A DNA stretch of 64,000 nucleotides from Macrostomum lignano (lineage: Eukaryota). Positions 12,421 through 57,005 of the stretch are shown here, piece after piece. Location: positions 41,883-105,882 of the forward strand of contig NIVC01000971.1 in the NCBI GenBank assembly GCA_002269645.1. Reading direction: 5' to 3'. A program made the position numbers and the translations under genes. The notes beneath the pieces were generated by a model. The model was not told where the DNA came from and did not search any database. It worked only from the letters and a program-made list of their open reading frames with translations. Numbering within the stretch: the first letter of the stretch is position 1; each line of letters starts with the position of its first letter.

Positions 12421-14995
<2,575 letters not shown>

Positions 14996-17734: not shown

Positions 17735-20700
17735 ATGGGAGTACCAGCCTTCTTTCGCTGGCTAAGCCGCAAATTCCCATCAATTGTGGTGCACTGCGTC
17801 GAAGAGAAACAGCGCGAAGTGGACGGCGAGACCGTGCCAGTTGACACCAGCCGGCCTAACCCGAACAACTATGAGTTCGACAATTTGTATTTGGACATGA
17901 ACGGCATCATCCATCCGTGCACTCATCCTGAGGATAAGCCGGCGCCGCGTAACGAAGCCGAAATGTTTGCCGCCATCTTCGAATACATGGATAGAATATT
18001 TGCTATTGTTAGGCCTAGGCGTGTTATCTATATGGCTATTGACGGAGTGGCGCCGCGCGCTAAAATGAATCAGCAACGTTCGCGCCGATTCCGCGCGGCC
18101 AAGGAGGCCAGGGAGAAAGCGATTGAGCTAGATCGGCTGCGATCGGAGCTCACAGCCCAGGGTATGACCCTGCCGCCGCCTAAAGCGCCTGAGGAGCATT
18201 TTGATAGCAATTGTATCACGCCTGGCACTCCGTTTATGGCGCGTCTGGCTGTGGCGCTGCGGTATTACATTCACGACAGGCTGCACAACGATCCGGGCTG
18301 GCGCAATCTGCAGGTCTTCCTTTCTGACGCAAATGTGCCCGGTACAGATGGCTCTTTGCGAGTTGATTTTTTCTCTTAGAAATACCTAAGGTAGCAGCGT
18401 AATATAACTATGTCCTAATCTGCTACTTTGTTAGTAGAGCAGTAGGATAAAAACCATTAGATAGTCCTGTGTGAGCGGGTGTATAGTATTGTAGGCAGGC
18501 ATCACAGATACTTTAATATTAATGTATTTATTTATTGAAGCGCACTTTAAGCGACATTGTCACACAACCGGCGAGAGGCATTACTGCCCATTCCGCCGAC
18601 TCCCCTGAGCAGGCACTCAAGCGCGCGGATGCGTACGCAGTCATACGCACAGGCACACACACAGGACTGGAGTGTACAGCAGCCCTAACTTTATTTACCG
18701 TTAGGCATGTACACTTCACTGTGCCTTGGGGCTGGCTTGTAGCAGAGCCAAGCCGAGATTCCAATTTATCCCCAAATTAGTATGACTGCGGCACTGGGGA
18801 TCGAGCCTGGGCCGCTGGCACATCAGTGCGCCGCGCTTGACCACTGGGCTACGGCCGCCCCCCGTCCCCTCTAATAAAAATTTAGCTATATTGTAGTCTC
18901 ACACAATGCTCTCCGCACAGGCGAAGGCGAGCACAAGATCATGGACTTTATTCGGCGCCAGCGCGCCCAGCCGGCGCACGATCCGAACACGCGCCACTGC
19001 CTTTGTGGCGCCGATGCCGACCTGATCATGCTGGGCCTGGCCACTCACGAGCCGCACTTCACCATCATTCGCGAGGAGTTTGTGCCCAACAAGCCGAGAC
19101 CGTGCGACCTGTGCGGCCAGCTGGGCCACGAGGCCAAGGACTGCCAGGGCCTGGCCAGGGACCAAGCAGCTGCCGAGGCGCCGCCAGTTATGGCCTCTGA
19201 GGCCGATTTCATCTTCATTCGTCTGCACGTATTGCGCGAGTATCTGCAGCGCGAATTAAAAATGGACGGCCTACCGTTTGCTTACGATTTTGAACGGGCG
19301 CTTGACGATTGGGTATTTATGTGCTTCTTTGTTGGCAACGACTTCCTGCCGCATCTGCCTAGTTTAGAGATTCGCGAGGGTGCCATTGATCGGCTGGTTG
19401 GAATCTACAAGAGAGCTGTCTATCAGGTGAGGCTCACTGTACTGTGCTGGTCTCCACAGTATGAAAATTTTATTCATTCATCTGTACCAAGGATCGGCGA
19501 ACTCCTGCCCTCGGGATCCTTTGCCCGCCAATACTGTACGCCCTGACCAAGAGTCTTGGCAAATTTACTGCTGCGCCAGACTTCGCCCGAACCCTACTTC
19601 CATAATTTTAGCTACGTAAAACTACTAGCATAATAGTAGTATCTGATAAAATTGCAACTAATATTTTAGTATAAAACTTAATCATGTATATGATAAAAAT
19701 TTGCTTTAACACAGACAGGCGGCTGGGTCACGGACTCCGGCCACGTGCACCTGGACCGGGTGCAGCTCATTATGCGCGAGCTCGGCCAGATGGAGGACGA
19801 AATATTCAAACGCCGGCGCAGCTCCGAGATGAATTTTCGTCGACGTCGCAAAGCCGACAAGCAGGCCAAACTGCGGCACACAATGATGGAGAGGGGCATG
19901 GCTGCTCCGCTTGGCAGTGGCCGGTCTAGCGGCGCTGCAGACCAACAGCTGTCGTCTGGACAGGCCATACGGGCCCTGATGCGGGAGAGCCAGATGGAGT
20001 CGCTTCAGGCTGAGCGGGACCGGCAGCAGCAGCAGCAGCAGCCGGACTCTGATGAGGAGGCCGATGCTAGAGATGAGGTATGATTGAATTTGGGGTTTAT
20101 ATGCTTTGGATACTGTCATTTGACTGTCAATGCCATTAGATTGTCAGTGTCATTTGATTGTCATGTGTCATTTGATTGTCAGTGTCATTTGATTGTCAGT
20201 GTCATTTGATTGACAGTGTCTATAAAAAGGCCTCCTTGTGTTCAAAAGAACAACCATGTACACTATAAGATGGCCAATAAATTTCATCACGTAACTGGCT
20301 TTTACACCCTTATTATCCATCATCACTCCTCATGTTTGCACTGGCGTTAAATACGAGTAAGTGAATGTTCTGTTTGCAGTGACAGTATGTTATCATATAC
20401 CTAGATTAGGCTTACCAACTAAGACCATAGGCTTTTATTAATGCCCAAACATCACCAACGCAGGTCCGCCTGTGGGAGGACGGCTGGCGGCACCGCTATT
20501 ATAGCAGCAAATTCGGGGTGGCACCGCAGGATAGTCGCGATTTCCCGCTGCTAGTTGCCAGCCACTACGTCAGGGGCCTGTGCTGGGTGCTGCGCTACTA
20601 TTACCAGGGCTGCGCCTCCTGGACCTGGTACTTCCCCTATCACTATTCCCCATTCGCTTCCGACTTCACCAACGTGGCTAGCGTCGATGTGGACTTTGAC

Positions 20701-21789
20701 AAGACTCCAACTGAGCCCTTCAAGCCGCTGGAGCAGCTCATGGCTGTGTTCCCCGCTGCTAGCGGCTCCCACGTGCCGCCATCTTGGCGCGGACTAATGA
20801 GCGATCCCGACTCGCCTATTATCGACTTTTATCCCATCGACTTCCGCGTCGATCTCAACGGTAAAAAATTTGCCTGGATGGGCGTCGCTCTGTTGCCATT
20901 TGTTGACGAGGCGCGCCTGTTGAAAACGCTGGAGTCAGTTTATCCCAGCCTCCTGCCAGACGAGGTCGAGCGCAACGTGCGCGGACCCGATCGACTGTTT
21001 GTTCGATCGACGCACCCAGCCGCCGCTCTCATCCAGCGCTTGTATGCTGCCGGCAAGAAGGCTCAGGTGGAAGACATTGAGACCAATGCCGATGCCAGCC
21101 TCACCAGCGGCGTTGGCGGCATCTACAAGCCGGATAAGCTGGCCTATCAGCCTGGCGATGATGTGCCTTCGCCAATTGCTCTGCCACAGTTCAAAACTCT
21201 GGCGCAATGCCAGGTGGCCTCCTGTCGCTATTCGGATCCCGTGTTCCCGCGCGGCCACGTGTTCCCAGCCCGTCCGCTGCCGGGCGCCCGGCCACCGCCG
21301 GCCACTCTTCGGCCGGAGGACCTGGAGCCCGGCCGGCAGTGGACGCCGAATCTTGGCCCGGGCCCCAACGGCGGTCACCGGCCGCGACAGTCGTTCGACT
21401 CTGCCGGGCCGATGCGCCGGATGGCATCGGCTGAGCTGGGCTCCGCTGAGCGATTCAACACCAGCCGGTATGGCGCTGTGCCTCCGCCTCAGCTGATGCA
21501 GCAGCAGCACAGAATGCAGCCTTCGGGTCGGTCTGTGCCGAATTTGCATCACCAGCACAATCAGTGGCCTGGCCAGTCGCCTTACCCGTCTCAGCAGCAG
21601 CAGCAGCACTATCAGCGGCAATTCCAGCAGCCACGGCATCAATTCTATCAGCAGCAGCAGCAGCAGTACCAGGGCCCGTATCCGCCGCAATACCAAACTG
21701 ACTGGAGAAGTGGCAGAGGCGGCGGCAGAGGTGGTGGCTACAGCGGCGGCGGGGGCGGTCGGGAGTCGCGCCGCTACCAGCCTTACTAA
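17735..21789 (+). CDS. XRN2: 5'-3' exoribonuclease 2; exons 17735-18341, 18921-19426, 19715-20077, 20464-21789 (933 aa)
   Basis: [57 protein letters not shown] (across the first splice), CCHC knuckle, [32 protein letters not shown]; all introns GT-AG with consistent phases. Confidence 0.97.
18520..18863 (-). mobile_element. tRNA-derived SINE in XRN2 intron 1
   Basis: Minus strand shows an A-box (gtagcccagtggtcaagcg), a B-box (ggctcgatccc) and an (AAAT)n tail; a second copy is at 59900-60237. Confidence 0.85.
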
Positions 21790-29180: not shown

Positions 29181-32100
29181 ATGGCCCAGAGCTCCGGAGC
29201 AAGTCAAAGCGGTGAGGAATCCTTCGAGCCAGAACTCAACAAAGCGTTTCGAGATCGGCTCAAACCATGCCTGGACGCCATAGACTGTCTGCGGGCTCAG
29301 GGTCTGCAAAAGGACGTCCGACTGCCGGCTATTGCCGTTGTCGGCGACCAGTCGGTGGGCAAGTCGTCCGTGCTCGAATCCATCTCTGGCATCGACTTGC
29401 CCCGCGGTCTGGGCATCGTCACCCGCTGCCCGCTGATGCTGAGCATGCGGAACCGTGAGGAGGCCGGCTGGTCTGCCAGAATCAAGTGAGGATCAGGAGT
29501 TGCCTGCTCAATGTCTGCAACGACTTTTGATTGAAATTGAATTTTTATTGCATTGATTATGACTTGAATTTATGATTACAGATATAAAACAAAAACAGGC
29601 GAGGGCAGGGAGAAGAAACTTACTGGGGCAAGCGAAGTTGGCCAAGCGATACGCGATGCTCAGAACGAGATGACCAACTCGAGCGGAGAGGTCTCCGAGC
29701 AGCTAATCGAGCTGTGGGTTGAGAGTCCCGAGTCTCCGGACTTGACACTGATTGACCTGCCGGGAATTGCCAGGTAATATCGGATTTAAAATGCTTACAT
29801 TTTTGTCTAGCAGCAGCAGGTGTGTGCTTTGCATGCGTTGCATTAGTAGCTATTAGTAGGGAGACTACCTGCGAAATGAACTGGCGTCTAAAGTCCCAAA
29901 CCCTGCTGAATGACGCCCATCCATAGTGTGAGAAGTTCAGTAATGATCAGTGAGTAAGGGGGTGGGATACTATGGTATGGTAGAGTAGCTTAGTTGGTTA
30001 ACGCGTCTAACGTTCGAGCCGGCCATTCCGTGCGCGGCCACGTGATCATTCGGAGTGCAGTGCTAATTTTCGGCGGTGCTCAAAGACACCCTAGGGGCTG
30101 TGGGTTGATTGTCACCTTGATTTGCGGCGATGCTCACAGACACCCTAGGGGCTGTGGGTTGACTCTCACCTTGATTTGCGGCGGTGCTCACAGACACCCT
30201 AGGATCTTGTCAACTATAGACAAGCGTTAGCTGATGACACTTGTTTTCTTGCCATACAATTGATTTAATTGGCGAAGTCTGGCGAACTATCATCCAGGTA
30301 CTCCATCGACGGTGGCGGAGCCATAGCCGGTCTAACCAAGTCCCTCATCCTGAGCTACATTGAAAAGGAAGAAATTTTAATACTGGTTGTCATCCCGTGC
30401 CACGTAGACATCGAGACAGTTGAGGCTCTCTCCCTAGCCAAAGAGGTCGACCCGGAATCGAAGCGGACAATCGGAGTTCTCACCTGTCCTGACCTGGTCA
30501 ACCCAGGCTCCGAATCAGAAGTCCTGGCGCTCATGCAAAACCGGAAGATTCCGTTGAAGAAGGGCTACGTCTCCGTGAGGTGCCGAACACCGCAGCAGTT
30601 GAAGGACAACATGAGCCTGCAGCAGGCGGCCAGGGAGGAGGAAGTGTTCTTCCGGACCCATCCGCACTTCAGGGCGCTGGACAAATTCGAGTACGGAACC
30701 AAGACTCTGGCGGTGAAGCTGAGCAGCGAGCTCTACGAGGCTATCAAGCACAACATCCCTGAGCTGATGAGAGAGGTCCAGGTAATTCGCCATGACACCC
30801 GGGCAAATAAAAACATTGGAGGCGGGGGCAAGTAGGTCAGTTGTAAACGTGCCCGGCTCTGACTCGGTTCGATTCTGTGCGCAGCCACATCTATTTGATC
30901 AAAGAGAGTGTACGAGCCTGACGATTAGAAAGTCCGTGTGAGCGTGTGTATGACGATTTCGCCAAAGGCGTTGCGCCAAGGCGCCTGCAGCCCTCCTCAA
31001 TAAATAATTCAAGAATCAAAGTGATGCTAGGACCTGTAGCTAAAATTTCAAAGCCGTACGTGCCTCGGTTGTTTCGTTAAAAATGCGCACCTGTGTCCTG
31101 AAAATCGCGGCCAACAGCTTTTTTATTATTATTGTGGTCACCCATGCTCATTTCCACACACGTACGCTACTGCCTTTTTAGATGAAACGCGAGGATATCT
31201 GCAAAAAGTTGGAAACCATGGGCTGCGGACCGCCCGACTCGATTGAAGAAATGAAGAATCTGCTGGTCAGAATGATCAATAAGTTCACGACGGACTTCGC
31301 CAATGTTTCCACTGGAACCCATCGTCACGAGCCAGACAGGCTGTTTGGTCGCTGCCGCAAGCACTGGGAGACACTGGCTGACGAGATTGAGCAGTGCGCC
31401 TTCTCAGAGCGCAGTGACGGTAAGACCGATACGCTCTTATCGATATGAGTTTTGTTAGGATATGAGACGCTATTACAATAAAATAGGTGAATAGTTCTAA
31501 AGACTACTAACTTATCGTCGGACGAGTATCAGGACGTATCGGTTGCACTCATGGCTAATGATTTGAGGACCAGAAATTTAAATACACTTTACTCCGAAAC
31601 ACCGTAACTTTTAGAGGTTCTTGAGATGTACTCAAAAAGTACTCATGACTCATGATTACTTCTTGAGATTTACTCATGAATTTAGAATTCATGATGACAT
31701 AGCTCGATTAAATTATGCTGGCACATCTACATCTGCAGCACAGAATCCCTATCAGTTGCAATGCCATTCCCGTTTACACAGTGACATTACAGCACAGAAT
31801 CCTTATCGATTACAATGCTATTCCCGTTTACACAGTGACATTACAGCACAGAATCCCTATCAGTTGCAATGCTATTCCCGTTTACACAGTGACATTACAG
31901 CACAGAATCCCTATCAGTTGCAATGCTATATTCCCGTTTACACAGTGACATTACAGCACAGAATCCCTATCAGTTGCAATGCCATTCCCGTTTACACAGT
32001 GACATTACAGCACAGAATCCCTATCAGTTGCAATGCTATTCCCGTTTACACAGTGACATTACAGCACAGAGTCCCTATCAGTTGCAATGCCATTCCCGTT

Positions 32101-35100
32101 TACACAGTGACATTACAGCACAGAATCCCTATCAGTTGCAATGCTATATTCCCGTTTACACAGTGACATTACAGCACAGAATCCCTATCAGTTGCAATGC
32201 TATTCCCGTTTACACAGTGACATTACAGCACAGAATCCCTATCAGTTGCAATGCCATTCCCGTTTACACAGTGACATTACAGCACAGAATCCCTATCAGT
32301 TGCAATGCCATTCCCGTTTACACAGTGACATTACAGCACAGAATCCCTATCAGTTGCAATGCTATATTCCCGTTTACACAGTGACATTACAGCACAGAAT
32401 CCCTATCAGTTGCAATGCTATTCCCGTTTACACAGTGACATTACAGCACAGAATCCCTATCAGTTGCAATGCCATTCCCGTTTACACAGTGACATTACAG
32501 CACAGAATCCCTATCAGTTGCAATGCCATTCCCGTTTACACAGTGACATTACAGCACAGAATCCCTATCAGTTGCAATGCTATTACCGTTTACACAGTGA
32601 CATTACAGCACAGAATCCTTATCGATTACAATGCTATTCCCGTTTACACAGTGACATTACAGCACAGAATCCCTATCAATTACAATGCTATTCCCGTTAA
32701 CGCAGTGACTGCGATGTGGGAGGCGGCCAAGAAGGACATCGAGGAGCAGAGGGGCTGCGAGCTGCCAGGATTCGACAACGTGTACCCTGTGGTAGAGCGG
32801 CTCGTGCGCAACCACTTTCTCAAGCTGGTCCGGGAGCCCTGCAGCAACTTCTTGGTCTCCGTTAATCAGGAGGTCGACGAGACGGTGCGAACCCTCGCTG
32901 ATCTTGTCTTTGGCGACTATCCAACGTTCAACCAGTTCATCAAGGAAGTGTGCGAGGGCATCAGAACCGGGCAGGTAGATCTTGCCAGGGAGCAAATCAG
33001 GAACATCTTCACGGAGGAGGAGTTCGTCTTCACGCAGGACAGAATTTTCCTGCTGGAAAAGGACAAGCAAGTGCAGATTTATGAATGCATTTTTGAACGC
33101 CATTTTTTGCAACTTTATCAAACACACTGTAAGTCAAGTTGGATATTGACTTAAATTAATTTATGCATGCACATCCTGAATGTTATAAGTTAAAGAATAC
33201 CAGTTCATTTGTAGCTAGTTGAATTGAATGCAGTAAAAATGGCGTACATAGGTGCTGATGACATGCCTTTTATTATCTGTGCCGGTGCTGTATACACTCG
33301 AACACGCAGGTGAATATCGTAGATGCCAGATCAGATTTAGCATCAAATTTTAATGCCATAACGCGTCTTGTTCTTATCTATTTGTGTATTCGTCACTAAT
33401 TTTTTAGCGTACCGCTAGGAATACAAGGGAGTGGCTGCATGCTGTCTTTCCAGGGGTCTATGAAGTTTTCTTGCCGAACTTTGCTTGCCGAACTTTGCTT
33501 GCAGTAAATTTGCTTGCCGAGGTTTGCCACCCAAAGTTTTCTTGCGGAACCCTAAAGAAACTATTTTTGAGCTCTTGTATTTCTAATTTTCATTTTCTAA
33601 GATTATTGGAAGTCGCTTATAGTGTTATGATTTTGTACGAGGATATGATGGATTTGAAAAGCCCTAACGCAGAAACTTTCGAAACTCCACGGAACTTTCG
33701 GTTCTATTTTAACTTTTGTTCCTCGGTGACAAGTACACCACACTAGTACTCGTGCAAATCCGCCAGTCCAAGTGCGTTTACATTTTTATGTACACTAATT
33801 AGTATATGCAATATTATACATTAGCATCACTACAATTATCATACCTGCTCAATCGTGCTGAAATCAGGAACTACAAAGATTTATACTGTTACTGATCCCT
33901 TTCTATCTATACTAAATCTCTAATCATTCTATATAATAAAATCTTAGAATGAAACTCTATAAGCCTAGTTTGAAAGCTCAGTGTCAAGTCAGTTTACGTC
34001 GACCCTGATAAGAATCCACTTGCAAAGCATCTGTGGCAAGTAATAATTGACTGACCAACTTCACAAGCAATCAAAACAAGCAAGCAGACAAGAAAATAAT
34101 TCGGCAAGTTAAAACCTTGCAATTGTGATTGCGAATTTCTAGGAAGCAGACATCAAAATTCCGCAAGCAAAGTTCGGCAAGCAAACTTCGGCAAGCGAAA
34201 TTCCGCAAGCAAAAGTCCCGCAAGCAAAGTTCGGCAAGCAAACGTCGTACTCCCCTTGCCAGATCAGGAATAAACCGATGTTGAACTGCATGCTATCACC
34301 GAATAAACCGAAAGTACGCGAGTGCTAAAAAAAGTCATCAGATTACGAGACTAAGGATTGAGCTGGTAGCAACAATAATTTTCACAATTACTCCACGAGC
34401 AGCTTACAATGCATGGAATATATATTTGTTTATTCAAGGTAGTAGTATGGGGGCTACAATAGCCTAACCCCGCTTTAAAACCATAAACATCGGATCCGTC
34501 CAATCTGACACAATCCTGAATTGACCTGATATGCTAAATTTATACCTGAAAAGCTATAAAATTTTATTTAGCCTAAATCACGACGTATTCTGATATAAAC
34601 ATTCAAGGTTTCGACCTTGCAAAGTCTCGACTTTGTGAAGGAAGGTGCTTTCGACATTGTGAAATTTTTAGTTTGTGAACCCCCCCCCCGTGAGTCGAGA
34701 GTTTGCCCCCAATCGGGCTCTGCAGACTGCAGTATTTTAACAATGCCCGGTTAGAGAATCCTGGGTCTCACTTCGCTGAACAAACCCGTCACCGCCATCG
34801 CCACCCCTGCAGGCCGTACAACGAGAAGCTCCGCCTGCAGCACCGCAAGCCGGAGTCGGGAGGCAAGAGCGGGGAGGCTTCGATCAGCTCGGAGAAGCCG
34901 GCAGCGACAATGCAGGACATCGTCGAGCGCAACACGCAGCGAGTGCTGGAAGGAGCCGAGGCGTACATTCGAGTGGCTGTGAGGCGCCTGCAGGACACCA
35001 TCACCCTGGCAGTCATGCACTACATGCTGCACAAGATGTCTGACAAGCTGCGCGAGTCGCTCATCGTCCTCGTCACGGAGCCGCAGCCGCTGTTCGACAA

Positions 35101-35200
35101 GCTGCGCGAGGAGAATCCCCTGATTAGCGCAAAGAGGCGACACCTGGCAGACAGGATGGAGAAGTTGGCAGCTGCTGAGCAGGAGCTGGCGAGGTTCTGA
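29181..35200 (+). CDS. Mx-like dynamin-superfamily GTPase; exons 29181-29485, 29582-29773, 30298-30781, 31182-31419, 32706-33066, 34813-35200 (~655 aa; last intron boundaries tentative)
   Basis: [45 protein letters not shown]...[19 protein letters not shown], and a GED ending [22 protein letters not shown]. No PH or proline-rich domain. GDQS and TRCPL are Mx-type rather than dynamin-type. Confidence 0.88.
29983..30205 (+). repeat. Degenerate tRNA-like head followed by three 54-bp tandem units (30071, 30125, 30179) in Mx intron 2
   Basis: gtagcttagttggttaacgcgtc is A-box-like; units are cggcggtgctcaaagacaccctaggggctgtgggttg... Confidence 0.6.
31727..32705 (+). repeat. 54-bp minisatellite, ~18 copies, ending at and copying the Mx exon-5 acceptor
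   Basis: Unit acagcacagaatccctatcagttgcaatgctattcccgtttacacagtgacatt; true acceptor ttcccgttaacgcag|tgac. Confidence 0.93.
33454..34254. mobile_element. MULE-like non-autonomous element in Mx intron 5
   Basis: GGG...CCC ends; inverted arrays of (ttgcttgccgaac) and (gttcggcaagcaa); imperfect 8-bp TSD ctttccag/cttgccag. Confidence 0.7.
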
Positions 35201-36999
35201 TCGAGCCGATTCATATCGGTTGGTTGACAGAAGAGTGACCATATTGCAATGAGCGTACATTATATTTATTATCAAATAGGTAAAATTTATCTAGTTATTA
35301 ATCAATGATTTAGTGTCTTTTTTTCTAGTTTATGTTTGAGAAATTTAATTCATCTTCTCGTGGGTGGCAATAATATATTAGGAAAACCATTACGCACAAC
35401 TTCTAAACTCTACTCTTGGCCGTACACATAATATATTCCAGGTGTTGGCCGACTTTATTAACCGAATGCCACATACAATAGACTATTTTCAATTTACCCT
35501 CGAGCTCCCGTGCAACAACCCGACGTCAAGCGGCTTTTCCGCTTTTGATAGCCACCCACTATACGGCTCTGAATGTGTTTCTTGACCTAATGAATTAAAT
35601 ATTTATTTATTCGCGTTGTTTAATATATTTATATTCTTGATGTTAAGTCGTGTAGCTAATTCTTGCATGTAGCAATTTTGAATCAATTTGATGAGTTATT
35701 TATTTGTTTAGAGATCAGAGATTAATTTATACAGGGGTCGGTAACCTTCTTTCACCTCAAGTGATTAAAATTTGAATGGGACGGGCAGAAAGGTCCCTTA
35801 GTGACTGAAGGCCAGTCACAGCTGAAGCTGAAACTTCAGCCAATTGAAGTTTACTAGATGAGATATTGTGACTCTATACTAAACAACTGGAGACACTTCC
35901 TATCTTCCTATAACTTGTCATTACGCCTAAAACTTGAAAGCCTTTGATGCCCGTAGTCACAAAGCAAAAAAGTACCTGTAATTACAGTTGTCCCTTCACT
36001 AGTTTTAGTTGTCCCTGAGCCCCTCTGTTTATAGCTTCTCAGCAAGTTAGATTACTTTTACAAAGGTAGACGCACATATTACTACTAGTGGTTCACTAAG
36101 TATAGACTGATTAAGTTTGATAGCTGGGCACTTGCCTTTTAAACCTTATTAATAAATAATTAGCTGATCTAATTCTTCAATTTCAACCTATTGATAGCAG
36201 GTACACTGTAACAGCAGAATAATTAATTCTAAATGGCCGTCTGCGTCTGATTTTTAAAAAGTCAATTAGCTATATATACTGTCAAGTTTCTCTCAACGAA
36301 AACATACATTGTTATAGCGATCATAGCATTGGAAGTCCTTTATAAGCCTGCAGCATGACAGATCAGCAGCATTTCAAATGGTTCGGCAATCCGCCATTTC
36401 GATGCTCCTTTAAATTCCTTAGCCAGCGCCTCCCAGAGTTGACGAAAGCCGGCCAACTTGCCAGCTCGTTTGCCACCGCTGACGACGCCTCCGTCTGCAG
36501 CGACGCCGCGGCGCAGCAGGACTTGATGGACTCTGAAAGTGCTGTGCCGTCTGGTTCGCAGGACTTCCAGCTGAGCATGCTGAATATTGGCTGGTTCTAT
36601 CAGCGGGACAAAGGCTGCTACTCTCGGTGTCCGAAGAATCAGCTGAAGGAGGACATTCTTCAGAAACCTAACTAACCAAAACATCGAGTTTAAATGTTTA
36701 AAAAGTTTAAACGCTCTAAAAAATTGCCCTCATTTTTTCTCGAATGTCAATTCTTGTTAGACCTCCACCGCGCTACTGAGGCCACTGATACATGCAACGT
36801 GTAAGCTTAAATAAACTTTTTCTACAGGCTAATAGTTTTTTGTTATGCTTACAATGTAGGCAAATTTTACGTGAAAGACAAGGCAGAGACGAGAACTTTG
36901 ATATAATGTACATGTACATAACTTTTAGAACAAAAAATACGCTGTCAGAGCCCTTCGATGGCAGCATCACATGCAGCTAGAGCAAACCTCTGGGAAAGG

Positions 37000-37650
37000 T
37001 GGCAAACGAAGACCGCGCCGTCGACCGAATCCACGGCACCAACTTCAGCCAGCAGGCAGTCGACGTAACGCCAACAAGTGCGCGCCTGTCCCCGCCGGTA
37101 AGGTGCCTGCAGCGTCATCAGCAGCAGGTCCTACAATGGTTGTGGGCAGTGCGACTCGGCACGGATCATATGTTGCCTGTCTGGATGGACCAGGCCGGCG
37201 CGGCGATGCAGGCACCTTACCGTCGCCGATCTTGTTGTACAGCAGGACGGTCTCGACTGGAACAGCGCCGCCCTCTGGTTGTCGGGTAGGAGCCTCGGAC
37301 TGGTGCAGGACTGCCCTCGCAGAACAAAAGGCAAATCCAGGCAAGCCCGCAGCGACGCCTCAGATCCTTGTGGACGCCGGTAACCAGCAGACCGCCAAGA
37401 TAGATAACAACACGGAAGCTCGATCGGTTGTCTGTCCATCTGCGCCTCGGCACAAAATTGCAGCCTTTATGTCGTCCGCAAGGCGCAGAGCGCGACGTTC
37501 TTCTGTGTGTTGACCACACCAGGCCGACACTCCCCACAACAGCAATCAGCTTGTCAAGTTGTCGCTGGTCCTGCCTTCGACAGTTGAGGACAGCAGGGCG
37601 AGATCGTCGGCGTAGCCAAGTACGCTGAGTCACTCTCTCCAGAACGTTGC
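37000..37650 (-). mobile_element. Degenerate RTE-like LINE RT fragment with CpGs retained
   Basis: Minus strand reads LGYADDLALLSSTVEG (tacgccgacgat at 37603-37614), QRQLDKL..V.SVGLV, IYLGGL, DLRRR.GLAW, VETVLLYN; several frameshifts. Confidence 0.8.
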
Positions 37651-43842: not shown

Positions 43843-46800
43843 ATGAGCCGCTATCCGCGCTGGACAGGCCGCAATGCTGACTGCTATGCTTGGATTGGCC
43901 AGCCAGCCAGACTGACTGTTGCCAGACCCGAGCCAATAGTAGAAAGCAGACAGGCTGCTAATGAAAATCAACAGCCAGCCGATGCTGCCAATCTACAGGA
44001 CTGCTACGTGATTGACAGGAGTGGCGCGTTCGAGTTAAGCACTGGGGCTGATGACTTTGTTCCCGCTAGGCTGCTGTTACACGCTGAGTTTCTCGCTGCA
44101 CCAGCCAGTGATGAGGACCTTGCCGATGATGCTGATGAGCCTGAGGCAGCGAAACTCTTTGAGCAGCTGCTCCATGGACTGCCCTGGCGGACATCTGCAG
44201 AAGAATTAAGGTGAATATTTGAGTCTAAGGCAGGGGTAGCAATCCGGCCCTCTGATGAGCTTAGATTCTTTATCTGGCACTTTTAGATAAAAATGTTTGC
44301 TAAAACCCTACTCTAAGACAATTGACTGCCAACCTAGCCTTAAACAGTGTTGGGCATTAACTCGTTAAATATTTAACTCTTTGTTGACGAAGTTAATTTT
44401 TTTAATCAACTTTGCCCAACACTGTCCTTAACCCTAACCTAACCTCCAATCCTGAACTTAACCTAAACCTAGCCTAAACCCCAAGCCTACCCGTAGCCTA
44501 AACCCTAAACCTAACCTTCAATCCTCAACTGAACCTAAACCTAGCCTAAACCCCAAGCCTACCCGTAGCCTAAACCCTAAACCTAACCTTCAATCCTCAA
44601 CTGAACCTAAACCTAGCCTAAACCCCAAGCCTACCCGTAGCCTAAACCCTAAACCTAACCTTCAATCCTCAACTGAACCTAAACCTAGCCTAAACCCCAA
44701 GCCTACCCGTAGCCTAAACCCTAAACCTAACCTTCAATCCTCAACTGAACCTAAACCTAGCCTAAACCCCAAGCCTACCCGTAGCCTAAACCCTAAACCT
44801 AACCTTCAATCCTCAACTGAACCTAGCCTAAACCCCAAGCCTACCCGTAGCCTAAACCCTAAACCTAACCTTCAATCCTCAACTGAACCTAAACCTAGCC
44901 TAAACCCCAAGCCTACCCGTAGCCTAAACCCTAAACCTAACCTTTAATCCTCAACTGAACCTAGCCTAAACCCCAAGCCTACCCGTAGCCTAAACCCTAA
45001 ACCTAACCTTCAATCCTCAACTGAACCTAAACCTAGCTTAAACCCCAAGCCTACCCGTAGCCTAAACCCTAAACCTAACCTTTAATCCTCAACTGAACCT
45101 AGCCTAAACCCCAAGCCTACCCGTAGCCTAAACCCTAAACCTAACCTTCAATCCTCAACTGAACCTAAACCTAGCTTAAACCCCAAGCCTACCCGTAGCC
45201 TAAACCCTAAACCTAATCTTCACCTCCAACCCTAAACCTAACCTAAAACTCTTAATTCTCTTTAAGCTTTTCAATTCCTGCAGTAGTATTTTTAAAATCT
45301 AATTTCAACAGCATGGGAAAGCGTCGACCGCAGGCGTGCCAGTTTGGCGAGCCGTTCGCTTCCCACCAACCTGCGGACTCGGCAAGCGTTAGCCGCGATT
45401 GGCCGCTGTCCGCCCTGCGTCAGCTGCGTCATCGGCTTGGCAATCGGCTTGGCATTGAGTTCAACTCGGTCGTCTGCCGGCTCTACCGGGACTGCCGCGA
45501 CAGCTCTGATGATGTTGATGGCGGGGACTGTCCGAGTTTGGGCCGGCATCCCAGCATTGCCTGGCTAGTGCTGGGTCGGTGCGGCCTGCGGTTTCGTTTC
45601 ACGCAGCGGCCTGGTCGCAGGTGAGCACTGTAATCACTCCCTAAGCAATATTACCTGAGCTCCTCTGATCACTCCCTAAGCCACATTCCCTGAGCCTCTG
45701 ATCACTCCCTTAGCCTCTGATAACTCACTGAGCCTCTGATAACTCCCTGAGCCATATTCCCTGAATCTCTAATCACTCCCTGAGCCTCTGATCACTCCCT
45801 TAGCCTCTGATCACTCCCTGAGCCATACTCCCTTAGCCCCTGATCACTCCTTTAGCCTCTGATTCCCTGAGCCATATTCCCTGAATCTCTGATCACTCCC
45901 TGAGCCTCTGATCACTCCCTGAGCCATATTCCCTGAATCTCTAATCACTCCCTGAACCTCTGATCACTCCCTTAGCCTCTGATCACTCCCTTAGCCTCTG
46001 ATCACTCCCTGAACCATATTACCTGAATCTCTAATCACTCCCTGAGCCTCTGGTCACTCCCTGAGCCTCTGGTCACTCCCTGAGCCTCTGGTCACTCCCT
46101 GAGCCTCTGGTCACTCCCTGAGCCTCTGGTCACTCCCTGAGCCTCTGGTCACTCCCTGAGCCTCTGGTCACTCCCTGAGCCTCTGGTCACTCCCTGAGCC
46201 TCTGGTCACTCCCTGAGCCTCTGGTCACTCCCTGAGCCTCTGGTCACTCCCTGAGCCTCTGGTCACTCCCTGAGCCTCTGGTCACTCCCTGAGCCTCTGG
46301 TCACTCCCTGAGCCTCTGGTCACTCCCTGAGCCTCTGGTCACTCCCTGAGCCTCTGGTCACTCCCTGAGCCTCTGGTCACTCCCTGAACCTCTGGTTACT
46401 CCCTGAGCCTCTGGTCACTCCCTGAGCCTCTGGTCACTCCCTGAGCCTCTGGTCACTCCCTGAGCCTCTGGTCACTCCCTGAGCCTCTGGTCACTCCCTG
46501 AGCCTCTGGTCACTCCCTGAGCCTCTGGTCACTCCCTGAGCCTCTGGTCACTCCCTGAGCCTCTGGTCACTCCCTGAGCCTCTGGTCACTCCCTGAGCCA
46601 TATTCCTCCTGAGTGATATCACTGCATGATCACTGAATTAACTTTATTTTAGCCAATCCTCAATCTGCGCAAACTCTACCCGCACGCAACCGTGCAGGCT
46701 GCGCCACCCTCTATCGCCCGTTATCGACGTTCACCTGCCCCCTGGCGGACTTCTACTCGCTCGCGGCTCCCTGCTTCGCGACTGGCGCATCCAGCTGCCG

Positions 46801-48343
46801 CCGGACCCAACAAGGTCGCAGGCGTGCGCGGCTCTGCTGGCATTCCGTCTGGTTGTGTCGCGGCCCAGAGAGCGTCTCACTGTTGTGCCGGATCGCAGCC
46901 ACCGATCGGCGCTGTCGGAGCGACACGGCTGCCTACCAGCCGAGATGTGGTTCACCCGGGCCGGGCTGGCCAAGCGCACTGTTGGCTCGGCAACTAAAGC
47001 TTTGTACGCTTGGGCCGACTGGCTTAGGCCTGGCGAAGGTTGCGAAGGCGTCACCTGCAAGACCGTGCACTTTTCGGCTGATGGCGGCGTCTGGCCTGAT
47101 TGGATGGCTCGGCTGGCAGCCGCGGTGAGCAGCGTCACTGACAATGCCAGACAGGGCCTGCCCAGTTACTCCTATGTGGATGCGCTTCTCATGCAGCGGA
47201 TTAATGACCACCTGCCGTGGCAGCCGAGTGAGATTGGCCCGTTTATGGCTGTAGTTGCCATGGGCAATGAGGAGGTGAGTCTGCCACTCACTCAAGTCAG
47301 TCAGTCAGTCAGTCAGTCAGTCAGTCAGTCAGTCAGTCAGTCAGTCAGTCAGTCAGTCAGTCAGTCAGTCAGTCAGTCAGTCAGTCAGTCAGTCACTCAA
47401 GTCAGTCAGTCAGTCAGCCAGCCACTCACTCAAGTCAGTCAGTCAGTCAGTCAGTCAGTCAGTCAGTCAGTCAGTCAGTCAGTCAGTCAGTCAGTCAGTC
47501 ACTCAAGTCAGTCAGTCAGTCAGCCAGCCACTCACTCAAGTCAGTCAGTCAGTCAGTCAGTCAGTCAGTCAGTCAGTCAGTCAGTCAGTCAGTCACTCAA
47601 GTCAGTCAGTCAGTCAGCCAGCCACTCACTCAAGTCAGTCAGTCAGTCAGTCAGTCAGTCAGTCAGTCAGTCAGTCAGTCAGTCACTCAAGTCAGTCAGT
47701 CAGTCAGCCACTCACTCAAGTCAGTCAGTCAGTCAGTCAGTCAGTCAGTCAGTCAGTCAGTCACTCAAGTCAGTCAGTCAGTCAGTCAGCCACTCAAGTC
47801 AGTCAGTCAGTCAGTCAGCCACTCAAGTCAGTCTCTGCCCCCATCCAGGTGCGCAGGCCCCTGGAGATGCGGCGCCGGGCCGAGTCCGATGCCGACAGCA
47901 CGGCGGAGGTGCGCGGGCAGCTGCGCTCGGCCAGCGTTGTACTCGGCGCCGGCGACGTGTTGAACCTTCGGCACGGCTTCTTCCGTGACTGGCAGTTCCG
48001 CTTGCCGAGGCACCGTCAAGGCAGCGGCGGTCGCGGAGTGCTGTTCCTGCTGTTCCGGCTGTCGGCTCCAACGTCGGCGACAGCTCAGGCTGGTGATGCT
48101 GAAGCAGCTGGATTGCGGCACACGCAGTCGAGCGTCAGGAGCAGCAGCGGTGTCACTCTGCGCACAGAGCCGGAGGCGTGTCCTCACCTGTGCAAGTGCT
48201 GCGCTCGCTGCTCTGAGGCTGTCAGCCTGCTGGATCTCGGCGGCAGCGGCAGGTACGCCGGCAGTGGATTGTCGTGTCCGCTGTGCTCTAAGGAGGCGGC
48301 CCGCAGTGTCAGACTGAGCTCAGCTGCTGCCGCTCTGGCTTGA
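43843..48343 (+). CDS. Tandem two-domain ALKBH3-like protein lacking catalytic residues, with Cys-rich C-terminus; exons 43843-44210, 45312-45620, 46653-47274, 47849-48343 (~597 aa; start tentative)
   Basis: Domain 1: VIDRSGAFEL, EQLLHGLPW, FNSVVCRLYRD.RDS, PSLGRHPSIA, L..GGLLL.RG....DW, AFRL. Domain 2: DHLPW..SE.GP.MA.VAMG, RPLEMRRR, L..GDVL.L......DWQ.RLP, LFRL. Four exons with canonical GT-AG sites, consistent phases (2,2,0) and no internal stops. Confidence 0.85.
44345..44424. mobile_element. 80-bp hAT-like mini element
   Basis: 12-bp perfect TIR CAGTGTTGGGCA/TGCCCAACACTG; degenerate 8-bp flanks gccttaaa/tccttaac. Confidence 0.6.
44425..45250. repeat. 72/66-bp tandem repeat built from telomere-like CCTAA/CCCTAA(A) motifs, ~11 copies
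   Basis: Unit cctaaacctagcctaaaccccaagcctacccgtagcctaaaccctaaacctaaccttcaatcctcaactgaa. Confidence 0.92.
45630..46600. repeat. 19-bp minisatellite (cactccctgagcctctggt); degenerate 5' half, ~29 near-perfect copies in the 3' half; fills intron 2
   Basis: Seen directly in the sequence. Confidence 0.95.
47285..47832. repeat. (GTCA)n microsatellite with ccactcactcaa interruptions; fills intron 3
   Basis: Seen directly; it accounts for the VSQS run in ORF 46855-47988. Confidence 0.95.
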
Positions 48344-49084: not shown

Positions 49085-49672
49085 ATGGTTAATATTTTGC
49101 CTTCCATGCGACTCGCAACAATGAGCGACAAGCAAAAGCAGAATCAAAATGGCAGCGAACTAACCAAGGTGCTGATGGGTGGCTCCTTAGGCGTGCCAAT
49201 CATGCTTGGCTATTACTCATTGATGCTGCCGAGGTTCACCGTCTGGCTGGCTATCGATGCCCAGCAGGCAGCTGATCCAGTGTATAGGCTGGGCCTCGCT
49301 CTGCGCTGGCTAGCTCCCGTGTGCCTCACTGTGGTTGCCTGCATACAGGCTGTGGCCACCTGTCGGATGTTTAATCCGTCCATTGACGGCAGGACGCCTC
49401 ATCGAATGACAGATCTTTGGCGCAGCATCCTGCAGAACACGCTTGAGCAGGCAATGGTGCTGACGCTTAACTTGCTGGCTATGTCGCAGAATCTGCCATC
49501 GGAGAAGCTGGCGGTTGTTCCTATGGCTGTTGTGCTGTTCATTGTTGCTAGGGTGATCTTTGCTATTGGCTACATCATTTGGCCGACAAGACGAGCTCTG
49601 GGCTTTAGCCTCACCCATCTGCCCAATGTGGCTATGACTGCCTACAATGTTGGCTGTTTGCTTCGCTTCTGA
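49085..49672 (+). CDS. Intronless TMEM79-like / MAPEG-superfamily membrane protein (start may be 49106 or 49121)
   Basis: Several hydrophobic helices; LQNTLEQ, NLL..S..LP...L..VP....LF.V.RVIF.IGY.....RALGF.LT.LP resemble TMEM79/MAPEG motifs. Confidence 0.7.
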   Translation: MVNILPSMRLATMSDKQKQNQNGSELTKVLMGGSLGVPIMLGYYSLMLPRFTVWLAIDAQQAADPVYRLGLALRWLAPVCLTVVACIQAVATCRMFNPSIDGRTPHRMTDLWRSILQNTLEQAMVLTLNLLAMSQNLPSEKLAVVPMAVVLFIVARVIFAIGYIIWPTRRALGFSLTHLPNVAMTAYNVGCLLRF

Positions 49673-50657: not shown

Positions 50658-52379
50658 ATGTTCTGCAGAAGTATCATCAGCCGGACACTTTCGCACTGTC
50701 GCTATCGCCCGGCGCCCCTAGCAACCGTTGCTAGGCCAGGATCGTTGCAGCAGAGGCGATGCTACATGGTGCCAATTGTAATTGAGCAGGACGGTAGAAA
50801 TGAGCGAGCCTACGATGTGTACAGCAGATTGCTGAAGGACCGGATTGTGTGTCTGATGGGCCCGGTCAGTCAGGAGCTGTCCAATGCGGTGATTGCCCAG
50901 CTGCTGTTCCTGCAGTCTGACAGTCCAAAGTCCACCATACACGTGTACATCAACAGTCCCGGCGGCTCGGTCACTGCCGGCTTGGCTATCTACGATACTA
51001 TGCAGTACGTTGCCAGCCCTGTGGCCACTTATTGCCTTGGCGAGGCCTGCAGCATGGGCTCGCTTCTGCTTCAAGCTGGCAGTCCAGGGAAACGGTTCGC
51101 TTTGCCTAACTCGCGTGTAATGATCCACCAGCCATTGGGATCGGCTGGCGGCCAGGCCACTGATATGCAAATTCATGTGAGCATTCGGGGCTGTAAAGCT
51201 ACATCATATTTAATGCAAATCTTTAAACAAAAAAATACTGGATACTAGAATGACTAGATATGTCACGCGAAAACAATGCGCTCATCTACAATTTCATTAG
51301 TAAAATTAGCGTTTTTTGCCTTTAAAATGGTAATATTCAATATTTATTAAATTTTAGAAGATATTTACGAATAGTTACAATAATCGCCTCTGACTTTCTA
51401 TGAGCAGACCCATTAAATTAGCATCTTCATTCTATTTCACCGAATCTAGGTTGCCCCAGACTCAAAAATATTTAAAACGAAATCATTTTAAGATTGAAGA
51501 TTGCAGGAAAACTTTTAAAAAGCCAAATCCAGTGCGTATGCATAGCGAGCAAGAGAGAAAAGGGGTGGCGACTGGCGCCCCAGCCAGGCCGATAAACAGT
51601 TATGCTTTTCTACCTCTTTCATTACTACTCTCTCATTGGCTGAGCTAGATTGGGACTGCCCCCTAGGCTGAGTTTTGTCCGTCTGACTTTGGCCTCTCTC
51701 CTTACTGCTCTCTCATTGGCTGAGCTAGATTGCCTGCCCCTTAGGCTGAGGTTTGTCCGTCTGACTTTGACCTCTCTCCTTACTGCTCTCTCATTGGCTG
51801 AGCTAGATTGCCTGCCCCCTAGGCTGAGTTTTGTCCGTCTGACTTTGGCCTCTCTCCTTACTGCTCTCTCATTGGCTGAGCTAGATTGCCTGCCCCTTAG
51901 GCTGAGGTTTGTCCGTCTGACTTTAACCTCTCTCCTTACTGCTCTCTCATTGGCTGAGCTAGATTGGGCCTGCCCCTAGGCTGAGTTTCTTCCGTCTTGC
52001 ATTCACTTGTGTATATCGAGAAAATGCTTTGTTGTTCGTTCTTAAGCCATTAAGCCTGACGCTACAAACAAAGACTATCGTACACACCAAGCAGTGTACC
52101 CGCAACCCTTCTGGGAATATTTAACTTTGCTTTGTACTATTCGAATCTTACTAACAGTGTTTTATCAAACTGCATGTACAGGTGGCGGAGATATTACGCA
52201 TGAAGACGGCCCTGTTGAAGATCTATGCCAAGCATACGGGTCAGCCCGAGTCCGTGCTGGCTGAAGCGATGGAGCGCGACCGGTTCATGTCGCCAACTGA
52301 GGCGGTTCAATTTGGCCTTATCGACTCGGTGCTGGAGAAACCGCCTGAACAAGCCGAAGGCGAGGCTAAGTCGTCTTGA
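50658..52379 (+). CDS. CLPP: Mitochondrial Clp protease proteolytic subunit; exons 50658-51176 and 52182-52379 (238 aa)
   Basis: Arg-rich presequence, then [43 protein letters not shown] (Ser), MIHQP (His), MERDRFM (Asp), FGLID.VL. Confidence 0.96.
51560..52050 (+). mobile_element. Second copy (opposite orientation) of the ~83-bp-unit element, in the ClpP intron
   Basis: ctctctcattggctgagctagattg..gtccgtctgactttggcctctctccttactg repeated about 4 times; both flanks match the reverse complement of 15380-15470 and 15640-15680. Confidence 0.75.
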
Positions 52380-54525: not shown

Positions 54526-57005
54526 ATGATGCTGCACTCGGAGCGCCCCAAGACTGGCCATGGCAGGCGCCGCGGCCCAGCCTGTGGCAGTTATTATGAC
54601 TCATCCGCCTCCACAAGGGCCGACAACAACGCCTCTGCCGCAGCCGCCGAAGCCGCAGCTGCCGCCGCCGCCGCCGCCGCCGCCGTTTCTGCCAATAGCC
54701 CAGCAGAAGCTGAGCTGCAGCAGCAGCAGCATCAGCCAGCGGCGCGGCCGAAGACCGGTCACGGTCGAAGGCAGACAATGCCACCGTCAGACCAGCAGCA
54801 GATGGACGTTCAGCAGGAGCAACAGCAGCTGCCAATCGGCATCGGCAGCTCGGACGCGGACGTCCTCATTCTTGACGACCCGAGGCCGCAGACGGCCGCC
54901 ACAGCCCGGCGTCGACGACCCCAGACCGGCTACGGGCGGCGCCGACCACCGGTGCAGTCGGGAGGCGAAACAGCCACTGCCAGTACGGGAAGCCGGCCGG
55001 GTCTGCGATCTGGCTCGGCTCGGCAGCAGCAGCAACAGCAGCAGCAGCAGCTGCATCATCACCGCAACACCATCGAGGACGCCATGATGGACCTGCAGCA
55101 GCCGCCGGACCCGCAGGACTTGCTGCTGCAGCAGCAACAGCAGGAGGAGCTCCTAGCACTCGCCACTACGTTTCCCCCGGCGAGGCCATTTTCATCCAAG
55201 TACAAAGTTCTGCCCGACATCAGCGGCAATGGGAATGGCCTGCAGCAGCAGCAGCCGCAGCAGCAGCCGCAGCAGCAGCCGCAGAAGCAATCTCCTCAGC
55301 CGAAAACTGCTACACCAGCTAGTCAGGTGGGCGCGCTGTGCTAAATGTTCATATTTAAACGCAGACTAAGCCTGCTAATTGAACTCAAGCTTGCACTGAC
55401 CCCCCCCCAGGAGCGCAGATTGCGCACCTGTCTGATGTTGAGAAAGTCATAGCCGCACCGCCTTGGATTGCGGCAGCGTCCAGAGCCCCCTTGGAGAGTC
55501 TAGCGAGCCGACTGGCCGATTCAAATGTTTTTTTCTCCTTCCGGCTCTCTCTGACGAGGTCTCCAATCGTATAGGTTTCCAATCAGTTAGACAAGTTCGA
55601 TCGGTTTCTATCGATGTATTACCCTCAACAAGGATGTTTTTTTTTCTACAGCTTCCTTGATCGTTACAGTTGCAATTGTATAATCAATTCAGAGACAAGG
55701 AGAGCTACAGCTGGTCACTTTTTGATATTGTTGTAATTCTATCTTGACGCGTCTCCAGATGATCTCTGAGTTAGACCAGGATATCGGAGTCTAGGGCTCG
55801 ATTCAAAAAAGAGGTTTTCTTGATGGTGTTGGGGGACAACTCTGGATATCGTCTGAGTAGATTAGTCTAGACCACAGGTACTAGAATACCTAGATGGGCC
55901 GCTCAGCACATATGCGTGTAAGCTACTTTCAGTTCAGTAGTAAGTTGAACAGAAGCATTTTAATGCGTTTTTAAAGCAGAGGCTTATTTATTGGCTTTTA
56001 CCCTCCCACTTAAACCCTCCAACCGCGTCTTTCCAAACCCTCCGCCACCCAATTTTTATTGCCTTTCTCTGAATTCCAGCCTAAAGCGGCCATGTACATT
56101 TCAGTGGACTGGCCAATGTACATTATTGCTGAACCAATTGGCAAGCTGTTTACGCCTGCAAGCTTTTGGGGCTTCTAAATTTATCAAATTCATTTTATCT
56201 TGCCCTTATTTTTTATAAAATAGCTTATGTATTCTTCTTTGCTACTGAACTGGAAGTAGAAAGCTGTTTTTTACTAAGTGTATATGCCTGTTGCCCATCT
56301 AGTTATTTTAATATTCGTGGTCTAGACTAGAAATTCAGAGTTATATTGGGAGAATGTGAAAAGAGCGAGCAGGCGCAGGAGCGGAGAAGAGGGGGGAGGG
56401 AGCGGAAGCTTTATTCTCACTGAATGCTAGTTTATATATGTTTTCTATAACGCATTTCATTGGTGTTCCCATCACGGTATGGAATCTTTACTGACGCACA
56501 GGCATGTGCTGTAATTTCCAGATAGAAAAAATCTTATAAAGTTCGCATTAGACTATAGAATATCGTTGGACATAGCATGTCTAAATTAAGATCACCATGC
56601 AGCTCAATTTCCTCTGTTCCGCAGGCGGTCTCCGCCACCCCCATTGTCGGCGACAGCGGCGGCTCAGGCGGCGCCAACGCGGCGGCCGCGCCCGGTCTTC
56701 GCCCCGAACCTGGCCCGGACTCGCCAAGGCTGCTGCTGGCGCTGCGCATGCCGAACGGATCCCGGATGCAGCGCCACTTCCGGCCGGACAGTCCGCTGCT
56801 GGCCGTGCGCAAATTCGCTGAAGCGGCCGCCGAGGAGGACTTCAGCGAGTGCGAGCTCGTGCGCGCCGACGACAGAACGGCTTTCAGACGCCGCCAGCTG
56901 GAGCGCAGCCTGCAGGAGCTCGGCATCCGGGATCGCAGCCTGCTCATCCTGCAGGAGGCCCTGGATGACGACGACGATGATGATGACGAAGAGATGCTGG
57001 AGTGA
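54526..57005 (+). CDS. UBXN10: UBX-domain protein, UBXN10-like; exons 54526-55326 and 56625-57005 (~393 aa; start tentative)
   Basis: UBX LLLALRMPNGSRMQRHFRP..L..V..FAE...RSLQELGI..RSLL; N-terminal RPKTGHGRR and SKYKVLPDI motifs resemble UBXN10; cag|gtgggc ... ccgcag|gcg phase 0. Confidence 0.75.

Follow-up and report, generated by a model that had tools for sequence, protein, structure and literature searches.

The Mlig023741g2 gene and its product

We analyzed a 64,000-nucleotide (nt) stretch of contig NIVC01000971.1 of Macrostomum lignano, referred to here as the window. Positions 43843 to 48343 on the forward strand are the gene BOX15_Mlig023741g2, whose product, PAA74205.1 (P0001), is 582 amino acids (aa) long. 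Its four exons, all with GT-AG borders, encode a protein (Mlig023741) made up of a domain related to the oxygenase ALKBH3, in which the Fe(II) ligands and several 2-oxoglutarate (2OG) contacts have been replaced, and a second, probably AlkB-derived domain (Table 1). This protein and its closest relative in the same genome, Mlig033276, have been deposited only as hypothetical or uncharacterized proteins.

The initial annotation of this DNA had proposed a four-exon gene with an open frame of 597 aa. The gene is indeed intact, open, and annotated from transcripts, but its annotated exon 3 acceptor lies downstream of the one proposed. Joining 43843-44210, 45312-45620, 46653-47274, and 47849-48343 does give an open 597-aa frame with canonical borders (AG before and GT after the exons). 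PAA74205.1 is the same except that exon 3 starts at 46698 (acceptor gtgcag/GCTGCG), and the two lengths differ because the 597-aa model opens exon 3 45 nt earlier. In the 582-aa form, the loop is close in length to that of ALKBH3 and of Mlig033276. The GenBank annotation of the M. lignano assembly consists only of transcripts derived from RNA sequencing (StringTie/TACO plus de novo assembly, followed by TransDecoder) (PMC5730564), so the Mlig023741g2 junctions have indirect transcript support. None of 20,000 shuffles of the coding sequence remained open. The length of intron 3 is not a multiple of 3, and its retention would therefore shift the frame.

All three introns consist almost wholly of tandem arrays (a 72-nt unit in 11 copies, a 19-nt unit in 49.5 copies, and AGTC in 132 copies). 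Two older UniProt models of Mlig023741 (P0003/P0004) deviate from the GenBank model: one lacks the first 25 aa of exon 2, and the other, of 917 aa, fuses an upstream open reading frame (ORF; window 36971-37513 region) to the gene. The names "HECT domain-containing" and "SAM domain-containing" carried by the UniProt models found no Pfam support on the 582-aa PAA74205.1 or the 597-aa model.

Table 1. Features of Mlig023741g2 and its 3' flank, in window coordinates
Feature	Position	Strand	Remarks
Exon 1	43843-44210	+	aa 1-122 plus 2 nt; ATG, GT donor; identical to PAA74205.1. Disordered N terminus (aa 1-53), then first strands and helix of domain 1; VIDRSGAFELS, EQLLHGLPW
Intron 1	44211-45311	+	1,101 nt; ~800 nt are a 72-nt tandem array, 11.3 copies (44426-45222)
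Exon 2	45312-45620	+	aa 123-225; domain 1 core
FNSVVCRLYRD	45460-45492	+	exon 2; domain 1 motif
Degenerate metal motif, DDVDGGDCPSLGRHP	45508-45552	+	exon 2; domain 1
Intron 2 as annotated	45621-46697	+	1,077 nt; 19-nt tandem array, 49.5 copies (45687-46599)
Alternative exon 3 acceptor	46652/46653	+	from the initial annotation; would add 15 aa
Exon 3	46698-47274	+	aa 226-418; end of domain 1 and first half of domain 2
DWRIQLP	46780-46800	+	exon 3; domain 1
AALLAFR	46828-46848	+	exon 3; domain 1
Domain 1/domain 2 boundary	~46860/46861	+	~aa 280/281; exon 3
Domain 2 motifs in exon 3	47206-47232 (DHLPWQPSE)	+	VPDRSHRSALS; DHLPWQPSE (aa 396-404); PFMAVVAMG
Intron 3	47275-47848	+	574 nt; nearly all (AGTC)n array, 132 copies (47295-47833)
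Exon 4	47849-48343	+	aa 419-582 and stop; end of domain 2, then Cys-rich tail
DWQFRLP	47987-48007	+	aa 465-471; exon 4; domain 2
VLFLLFR	48038-48058	+	aa 482-488; exon 4; domain 2
Domain 1	44002-46860	+	aa 54-280, exons 1-3; ALKBH3-type fold, Fe(II)/2OG site destroyed
Domain 2	46861-48067	+	aa 281-491, exons 3-4; AlkB-like fold, remote; no complete metal triad; homologue of the Mlig033276 C-terminal domain
Cys-rich tail	48068-48340	+	aa 492-582; low AlphaFold confidence; carries CPHLCKCCARC...CPLC
AATAAA	48688-48693	+	candidate poly(A) signal, 345 nt past the stop and upstream of the MAPEG gene (ATG at 49085)

Ancestry and active site of domain 1

Among PDB sequences, phmmer matched a single protein, human ALKBH3 (8jnk and 2iuw), over aa 98-298 of Mlig023741 with an expectation value (E) of 4.7e-12. 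When phmmer was run exhaustively against 1.84 billion representative proteins, 75 AlkB-type matches emerged, every one of them over domain 1, and only AlkB proteins matched aa 98-298. We then considered an AlphaFold (AF2) model built from a 34-row alignment; a single-sequence run, with a mean predicted local distance difference test score (pLDDT) of 32, was discarded. The pLDDT of domain 1 in the model was 85-94, falling below 50 at aa 1-51. Foldseek returned human ALKBH3 as the best structural match (E 1.6e-15; template modeling [TM] score 0.79-0.86), followed by ALKBH2, ALKBH6, and Escherichia coli AlkB. As modeled, domain 1 folds into an AlkB-type double-stranded beta-helix (DSBH).

Domain 1 shares this fold with human ALKBH3 (ABH3; PDB 2iuw, 8jnk, 9ncz), with which it is collinear and 27% identical and has in common the motifs VIDR.G..E, EQL...PW, FNS..C.LYR, and PSLGR.P.IA. 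Unlike human ALKBH3, Mlig023741 has no Fe(II) triad, has lost N179, R269, and N271, is changed at Y143, L177, and R122, carries a second domain and a Cys-rich tail, and falls below the threshold of Pfam PF13532. We compared these columns, numbered as in human ALKBH3, across 30 relatives. The Fe(II) ligands H191 and D193 were H and D in all 30, and H257 was H in 29 (the other being a gap); the corresponding residues of Mlig023741 are D192, G194, and I257. The 2OG contacts fared similarly: N179 was N in 30/30 relatives and is R in Mlig023741, while R269 and N271, each present in 29/30 with one gap, have become A and L, respectively. Y181, D194, and R275 are conserved in the relatives and retained. 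In the base pocket, the mostly conserved Y143 and R122 have become H and E, and L177, taken from the alignment block, has become V. Human ALKBH3 becomes inactive when mutated to H191A or L177A, and its binding of the lesion is disrupted by Y143A (PMC10816986).

An ALKBH3-like first domain without the HxD...H triad and with several 2OG contacts lost had been predicted in the initial annotation, and all of the motifs it quoted are present where it placed them. To judge by its sequence, domain 1 is of ALKBH3 descent yet without the catalytic features that define the family, and Mlig023741 could not be a 2OG/Fe(II) demethylase. If a pseudoenzyme is taken to be a clear homologue of an enzyme in which essential catalytic residues are replaced, then Mlig023741 would be one. 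An oxygenase kept active by substitute ligands, for example, D192 and D195, might make use of the Asp at the first His position and the adjacent D195, which is kept. However, the distal His is an Ile with no His, Asp, or Glu nearby, the Asp of HxD is a Gly, and three 2OG contacts are gone, leaving this explanation extremely unlikely.

It had also been suggested that the protein could read methylated bases. Such a reader would have a dead pocket that still flips out and holds 1-methyladenine (m1A) or 3-methylcytosine (m3C), leaving the methyl group on, and could draw on the retained ALKBH3-like fold, on Y181 and the D189/D194-equivalent Asp residues, all kept, and on the basic character of domain 2 (calculated isoelectric point [pI], 10.0). 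Domain 1 itself, however, is not basic (pI 6.7), and its stacking and pocket residues have been replaced (Y143H, H191D, L177V, R122E). In human ALKBH3, Y143A and H191A reduce DNA and cofactor binding (PMC10816986). The replacement of Y143, L177, H191, and R122 by H, V, D, and E weakens the idea of an m1A/m3C reader, which we now consider quite improbable.

The paralogue Mlig033276 and the second domain

The closest relative of Mlig023741 is Mlig033276 (PAA54966.1/A0A1I8FX44; P0005, with a GenBank form, P0081, that lies on two contigs). It was the only protein in the exhaustive search to match both domains (E 8e-35, aa 56-500 of Mlig023741), and the two proteins are 34% identical. Domain 1 of Mlig033276 retains WHADDE, DWLHSVP, and RINLTFR, with all catalytic residues present. 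The protein matches PF13532 at 1.6e-33 (117 bits) and human ALKBH3 at E 2.7e-53; the best matches of its domain 1 are vertebrate ALKBH3 proteins, and its N-terminal motif RRQARVQGAW is of the ALKBH3 type. The C-terminal half of Mlig033276 shares homology (31% identity) with domain 2 of Mlig023741 and likewise lacks the triad. Since Mlig033276 combines an intact ALKBH3 domain with a dead domain 2, the two-domain layout predates the catalytic loss in Mlig023741, which is no stand-alone invention but the degenerate paralogue of an ALKBH3 with two domains. The initial annotation had not recognized the architecture from the known ALKBH1-8/FTO proteins; it is not unique to this gene, as Mlig033276, in the same genome, shares it. 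A third ALKBH2/3-like protein of M. lignano (P0114) is intact and has a single domain.

The paralogues thus agree in having two domains, the second without a triad, and differ in that domain 1 of Mlig033276 is catalytically intact, the Cys-rich tail is found only in Mlig023741, and the three intron positions are all different. The junctions fall after aa 122, 225, and 418 in Mlig023741 and after aa 174, 333, and 437 of P0081 in Mlig033276; the nearest pair is separated by ~7 codons and differs in phase. These differences suggest either that introns have turned over or that a retrocopy arose and later gained introns. The introns of Mlig033276 are also filled with arrays, of unrelated 24-, 21-, and 40-nt units (L004 8739-9424, 10081-10776, and 11251-11702). 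A horizontal origin was raised, as some of the best non-flatworm matches of domain 1 look bacterial by eye, and was rejected because of the spliceosomal introns, a GC content like that of the paralogue's coding sequence, and the match to Mlig033276, which includes domain 2.

A relative-rate test on domain 1 counted 52 unique changes in Mlig023741 and 18 in Mlig033276 (chi-square, 16.5), i.e., evolution about three times faster in the former. Between the paralogues, dN (nonsynonymous divergence) was 0.74 and dS (synonymous divergence) was 1.87; dN/dS was discarded because dS is saturated, a sign of an old split that the frame and all splice sites of Mlig023741 have nonetheless survived.

Domain 2 is the more remote of the two. 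It had no Pfam match at E values up to 10, and a profile search against PDB sequences was also empty. Exhaustive phmmer detected no homologue of it outside M. lignano, in libraries from which other Macrostomum transcriptomes may be missing. In a word-indexed homologue search, the full protein found only itself, and the domain 2 alignment found nothing, not even the query's own proteins, which marks the sensitivity limit of that search.

Profile and cross-paralogue comparisons did find a relationship. With hhalign, a two-sequence profile of domain 2 aligned in the correct register over 116 columns to a 38-sequence AlkB alignment, with a probability of 74.5% (E 2.7e-5; score, 39.7), whereas 200 column shuffles had a mean score of 14.1 (standard deviation, 2.9; maximum, 26.2) and the reversed control scored 22.8. 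In a Smith-Waterman comparison, the intact domain 1 of Mlig033276 scored 74 against domain 2 of Mlig023741 (shuffles: mean, 35; standard deviation, 6.2; z, 6.3; 0/500 reached the score), and the two were collinear in the same register over ~185 residues. The pairings (Mlig033276 domain 1 first) include LPW with LP..W, PSLG..P.IA..S.G with PSEIG.PFMAVVAMG, GDLLVMRG with GDVLNLRH, DWLHSVP with DWQFRLP, and INLTFR with LFLLFR. In the AF2 model, the 14 elements of domain 1, namely, three strands, a helix, a strand, a helix, five strands, a helix, and two strands, recur in that order in domain 2 (pLDDT 50-82), which has two extra short helices. As the input alignment had no AlkB rows under domain 2, this topology was not copied from the alignment.

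We weighed whether domain 2 might instead be an unrelated, lineage-specific C-terminal extension that superficially mimics AlkB motifs. The silence of Pfam and the PDB sequences would fit this, as would the lack of significance of the within-protein comparisons, an hhalign probability of only 74.5% from a two-sequence profile, and the moderate AF2 confidence. It is hard to reconcile with an hhalign score far above the 200 shuffles and the reversed control, with the in-register cross-paralogue alignment, and with a predicted topology that repeats domain 1 element by element. We consider an unrelated extension unlikely and an AlkB-derived fold for domain 2 very likely. The second AlkB-like domain without a complete triad that had been predicted, with motifs that are all present, is thus upheld, as a remote relationship on which hhalign, Smith-Waterman, and AF2 topology concur. 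The distal His column of domain 2 is F in Mlig023741 and Y in Mlig033276, and the HxD position reads W-Q/R in the hhalign register or H-L-P in the Smith-Waterman register. On either alignment, at most one His is left, and no metal triad would be possible in either paralogue.

Duplicate copies, possible function, and known dead oxygenases

A second copy of the gene, g1 (P0002), lies on contig NIVC01000464.1 and has the same intron positions. MAPEG and ClpP genes follow it as they follow g2, which places both copies within a duplicated block. Both are intact, and their coding sequences differ at 9 positions, 6 synonymous and 3 nonsynonymous (dN, 0.0023; dS, 0.0136; dN/dS, 0.17; binomial P = 0.011). 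The downstream flanks differ by ~1.2% and the upstream flanks by 4 to 6%. Exons 2 and 3 (886 nt; window 45312-47274 versus L001 11398-13284) are 100% identical, which could reflect gene conversion or uneven constraint, and the copies differ at 7 of the 495 nt of exon 4. The copy number of the tandem arrays varies between g1 and g2.

Elsewhere in the window, on the forward strand, are exons of an XRN-type 5'-3' exoribonuclease (17735-21789), identified by eye from its N-terminal motif, and, from precomputed Pfam matches, a dynamin (30269-35200), a MAPEG-family protein (49085-49672), which is the next gene after Mlig023741g2, and a ClpP protease (50658-52379). A forward ORF at 56577-57005 lies inside an unannotated 391-aa gene. 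Two adjoining ORFs on the reverse strand (12732-14602) look by eye like the reverse transcriptase and RNase H parts of a non-long-terminal-repeat retrotransposon, and there are further large tandem arrays. A tblastn match at 56035-56133 (E 0.002) was dismissed as noise, the sequence looking noncoding.

We think that Mlig023741 is probably a noncatalytic paralogue (pseudoenzyme) of the worm's own two-domain ALKBH3 that acts through binding. The chief competing explanation is that it is a redundant duplicate in slow decay, an ALKBH3 copy in a neopolyploid genome that is transcribed and open but is drifting without a role of its own. All of the catalytic and pocket residues are gone, the protein has evolved about three times faster than Mlig033276, Pfam is silent, it is known from one species only, and the M. 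lignano genome contains 180 Mb of duplicated blocks (PMC5730564), all of which would fit decay. Against this, both copies have kept 582 codons and six splice sites intact despite an old split from Mlig033276 (34% identity, dS saturated); no shuffled coding sequence stayed open, and dN/dS between the copies is low. The motifs that build the fold have been retained while the active-site residues were replaced, a pattern that fits a pseudoenzyme better than free decay. Signs of the maintenance proposed in the initial annotation are two intact copies, a low dN/dS (from 9 substitutions only), and a frame that is open at a dS of >1 to the paralogue. Decay without a role seems somewhat unlikely to us.

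Several points weigh against the idea of a maintained binding protein. Pfam, including PF13532 (2OG-FeII_Oxy_2), was unmatched at E values up to 10 by the full protein and by both halves. Domain 2 went undetected in searches of hidden Markov models against sequences, and domains 1 and 2 of Mlig023741 did not match each other significantly by BLASTP or Smith-Waterman. No orthologue outside M. lignano was found in the homologue searches, including exhaustive phmmer. The evidence for selection comes from nine substitutions, all in exons 1 and 4, and, as exons 2 and 3 are identical between the copies, gene conversion could distort dN/dS. Searches of the M. lignano literature found no evidence of expression level, tissue, or protein, and a binding or regulatory role is something that we purely infer.

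A maintained pseudoenzyme could have arisen as follows. An ancestral Macrostomum ALKBH3 would have acquired another domain of AlkB origin, the simplest route being an internal tandem duplication, and this second domain would then have lost its metal site, a state that would persist in Mlig033276, with its active-looking domain 1 and dead domain 2. A later gene duplication would have yielded Mlig023741, whose domain 1 would have sped up about threefold, losing its Fe(II) ligands, three 2OG contacts, and base-pocket residues, while the protein kept the residues that build the jelly roll and acquired its Cys-rich tail. We infer both this order of events and selection for a new role. The tail includes CPHLCKCCARC-x21-CPLC (aa 529-564, window 48179-48286), which has no Pfam match and is absent from Mlig033276; speculatively, it might bind zinc.

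Because the base pocket is altered as well, a role as scaffold or regulator is more likely than one in reading methylated bases. For example, the protein might act on the ligands of the active two-domain ALKBH3 as their decoy or partner, competing for or bridging partners or substrates. Alternatively, it may be a general nucleic acid binder, given the calculated pI of 10 of domain 2. Derived from a two-domain ALKBH3, Mlig023741 is lineage specific and dead in both domains. More tentatively, it is possible that Macrostomum has a lineage-specific tandem AlkB/pseudo-AlkB family whose dead member is the first AlkB-family pseudoenzyme and a selected regulator, either a decoy or partner of the two-domain ALKBH3 or a protein that binds nucleic acid in alkylated or single-stranded form.

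AlkB-family proteins have been studied as DNA and RNA repair enzymes and as erasers of RNA methyl marks. In literature searches, neither AlkB domains in tandem nor any naturally dead AlkB homologue or AlkB pseudoenzyme turned up, and text searches for Mlig023741 or Mlig033276 and for Macrostomum with ALKBH, as well as the supplements of M. lignano papers, gave nothing. The two proteins form a natural matched pair in one genome, one with a live and a dead domain and the other with both dead, and this pair makes testable both the role of a noncatalytic AlkB fold and the reuse of a tandem duplicated oxygenase domain, for which OGFOD1/Tpa1p is a precedent. RNA interference is in routine use in M. 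lignano. Transgenesis is also established (PMC5730564). The scope is modest, with a single species, an uncharacterized protein, and simple decay as a live alternative.

Outside the AlkB family, there is precedent for a catalytic DSBH followed by a metal-less one. In OGFOD1/Tpa1p/Ofd1, a catalytic jelly roll is followed by a metal-less jelly roll, believed to be a product of duplication with a role in partner binding or oligomerization (PMC4396695). This parallels the live and dead domains of Mlig033276, whereas in Mlig023741 the first domain is dead as well. The OGFOD1/Tpa1p/Ofd1 proteins are prolyl hydroxylases of a different subfamily; no OGFOD1/Tpa1p chain was among the PDB sequence matches, and Foldseek gave only Ofd2, which is AlkB-like. 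As no sequence relationship to the OGFOD1 subfamily was found, Mlig023741 falls outside it, and the resemblance is one of analogy. Among the JmjC proteins, JARID2 is an experimentally characterized dead member of the 2OG oxygenase families that has kept the fold, lost the metal ligands, and taken on a noncatalytic role. JARID2-type proteins belong to a different family and have a single dead domain, whereas Mlig023741 has two; by analogy, Mlig023741 may work as these other dead members do.

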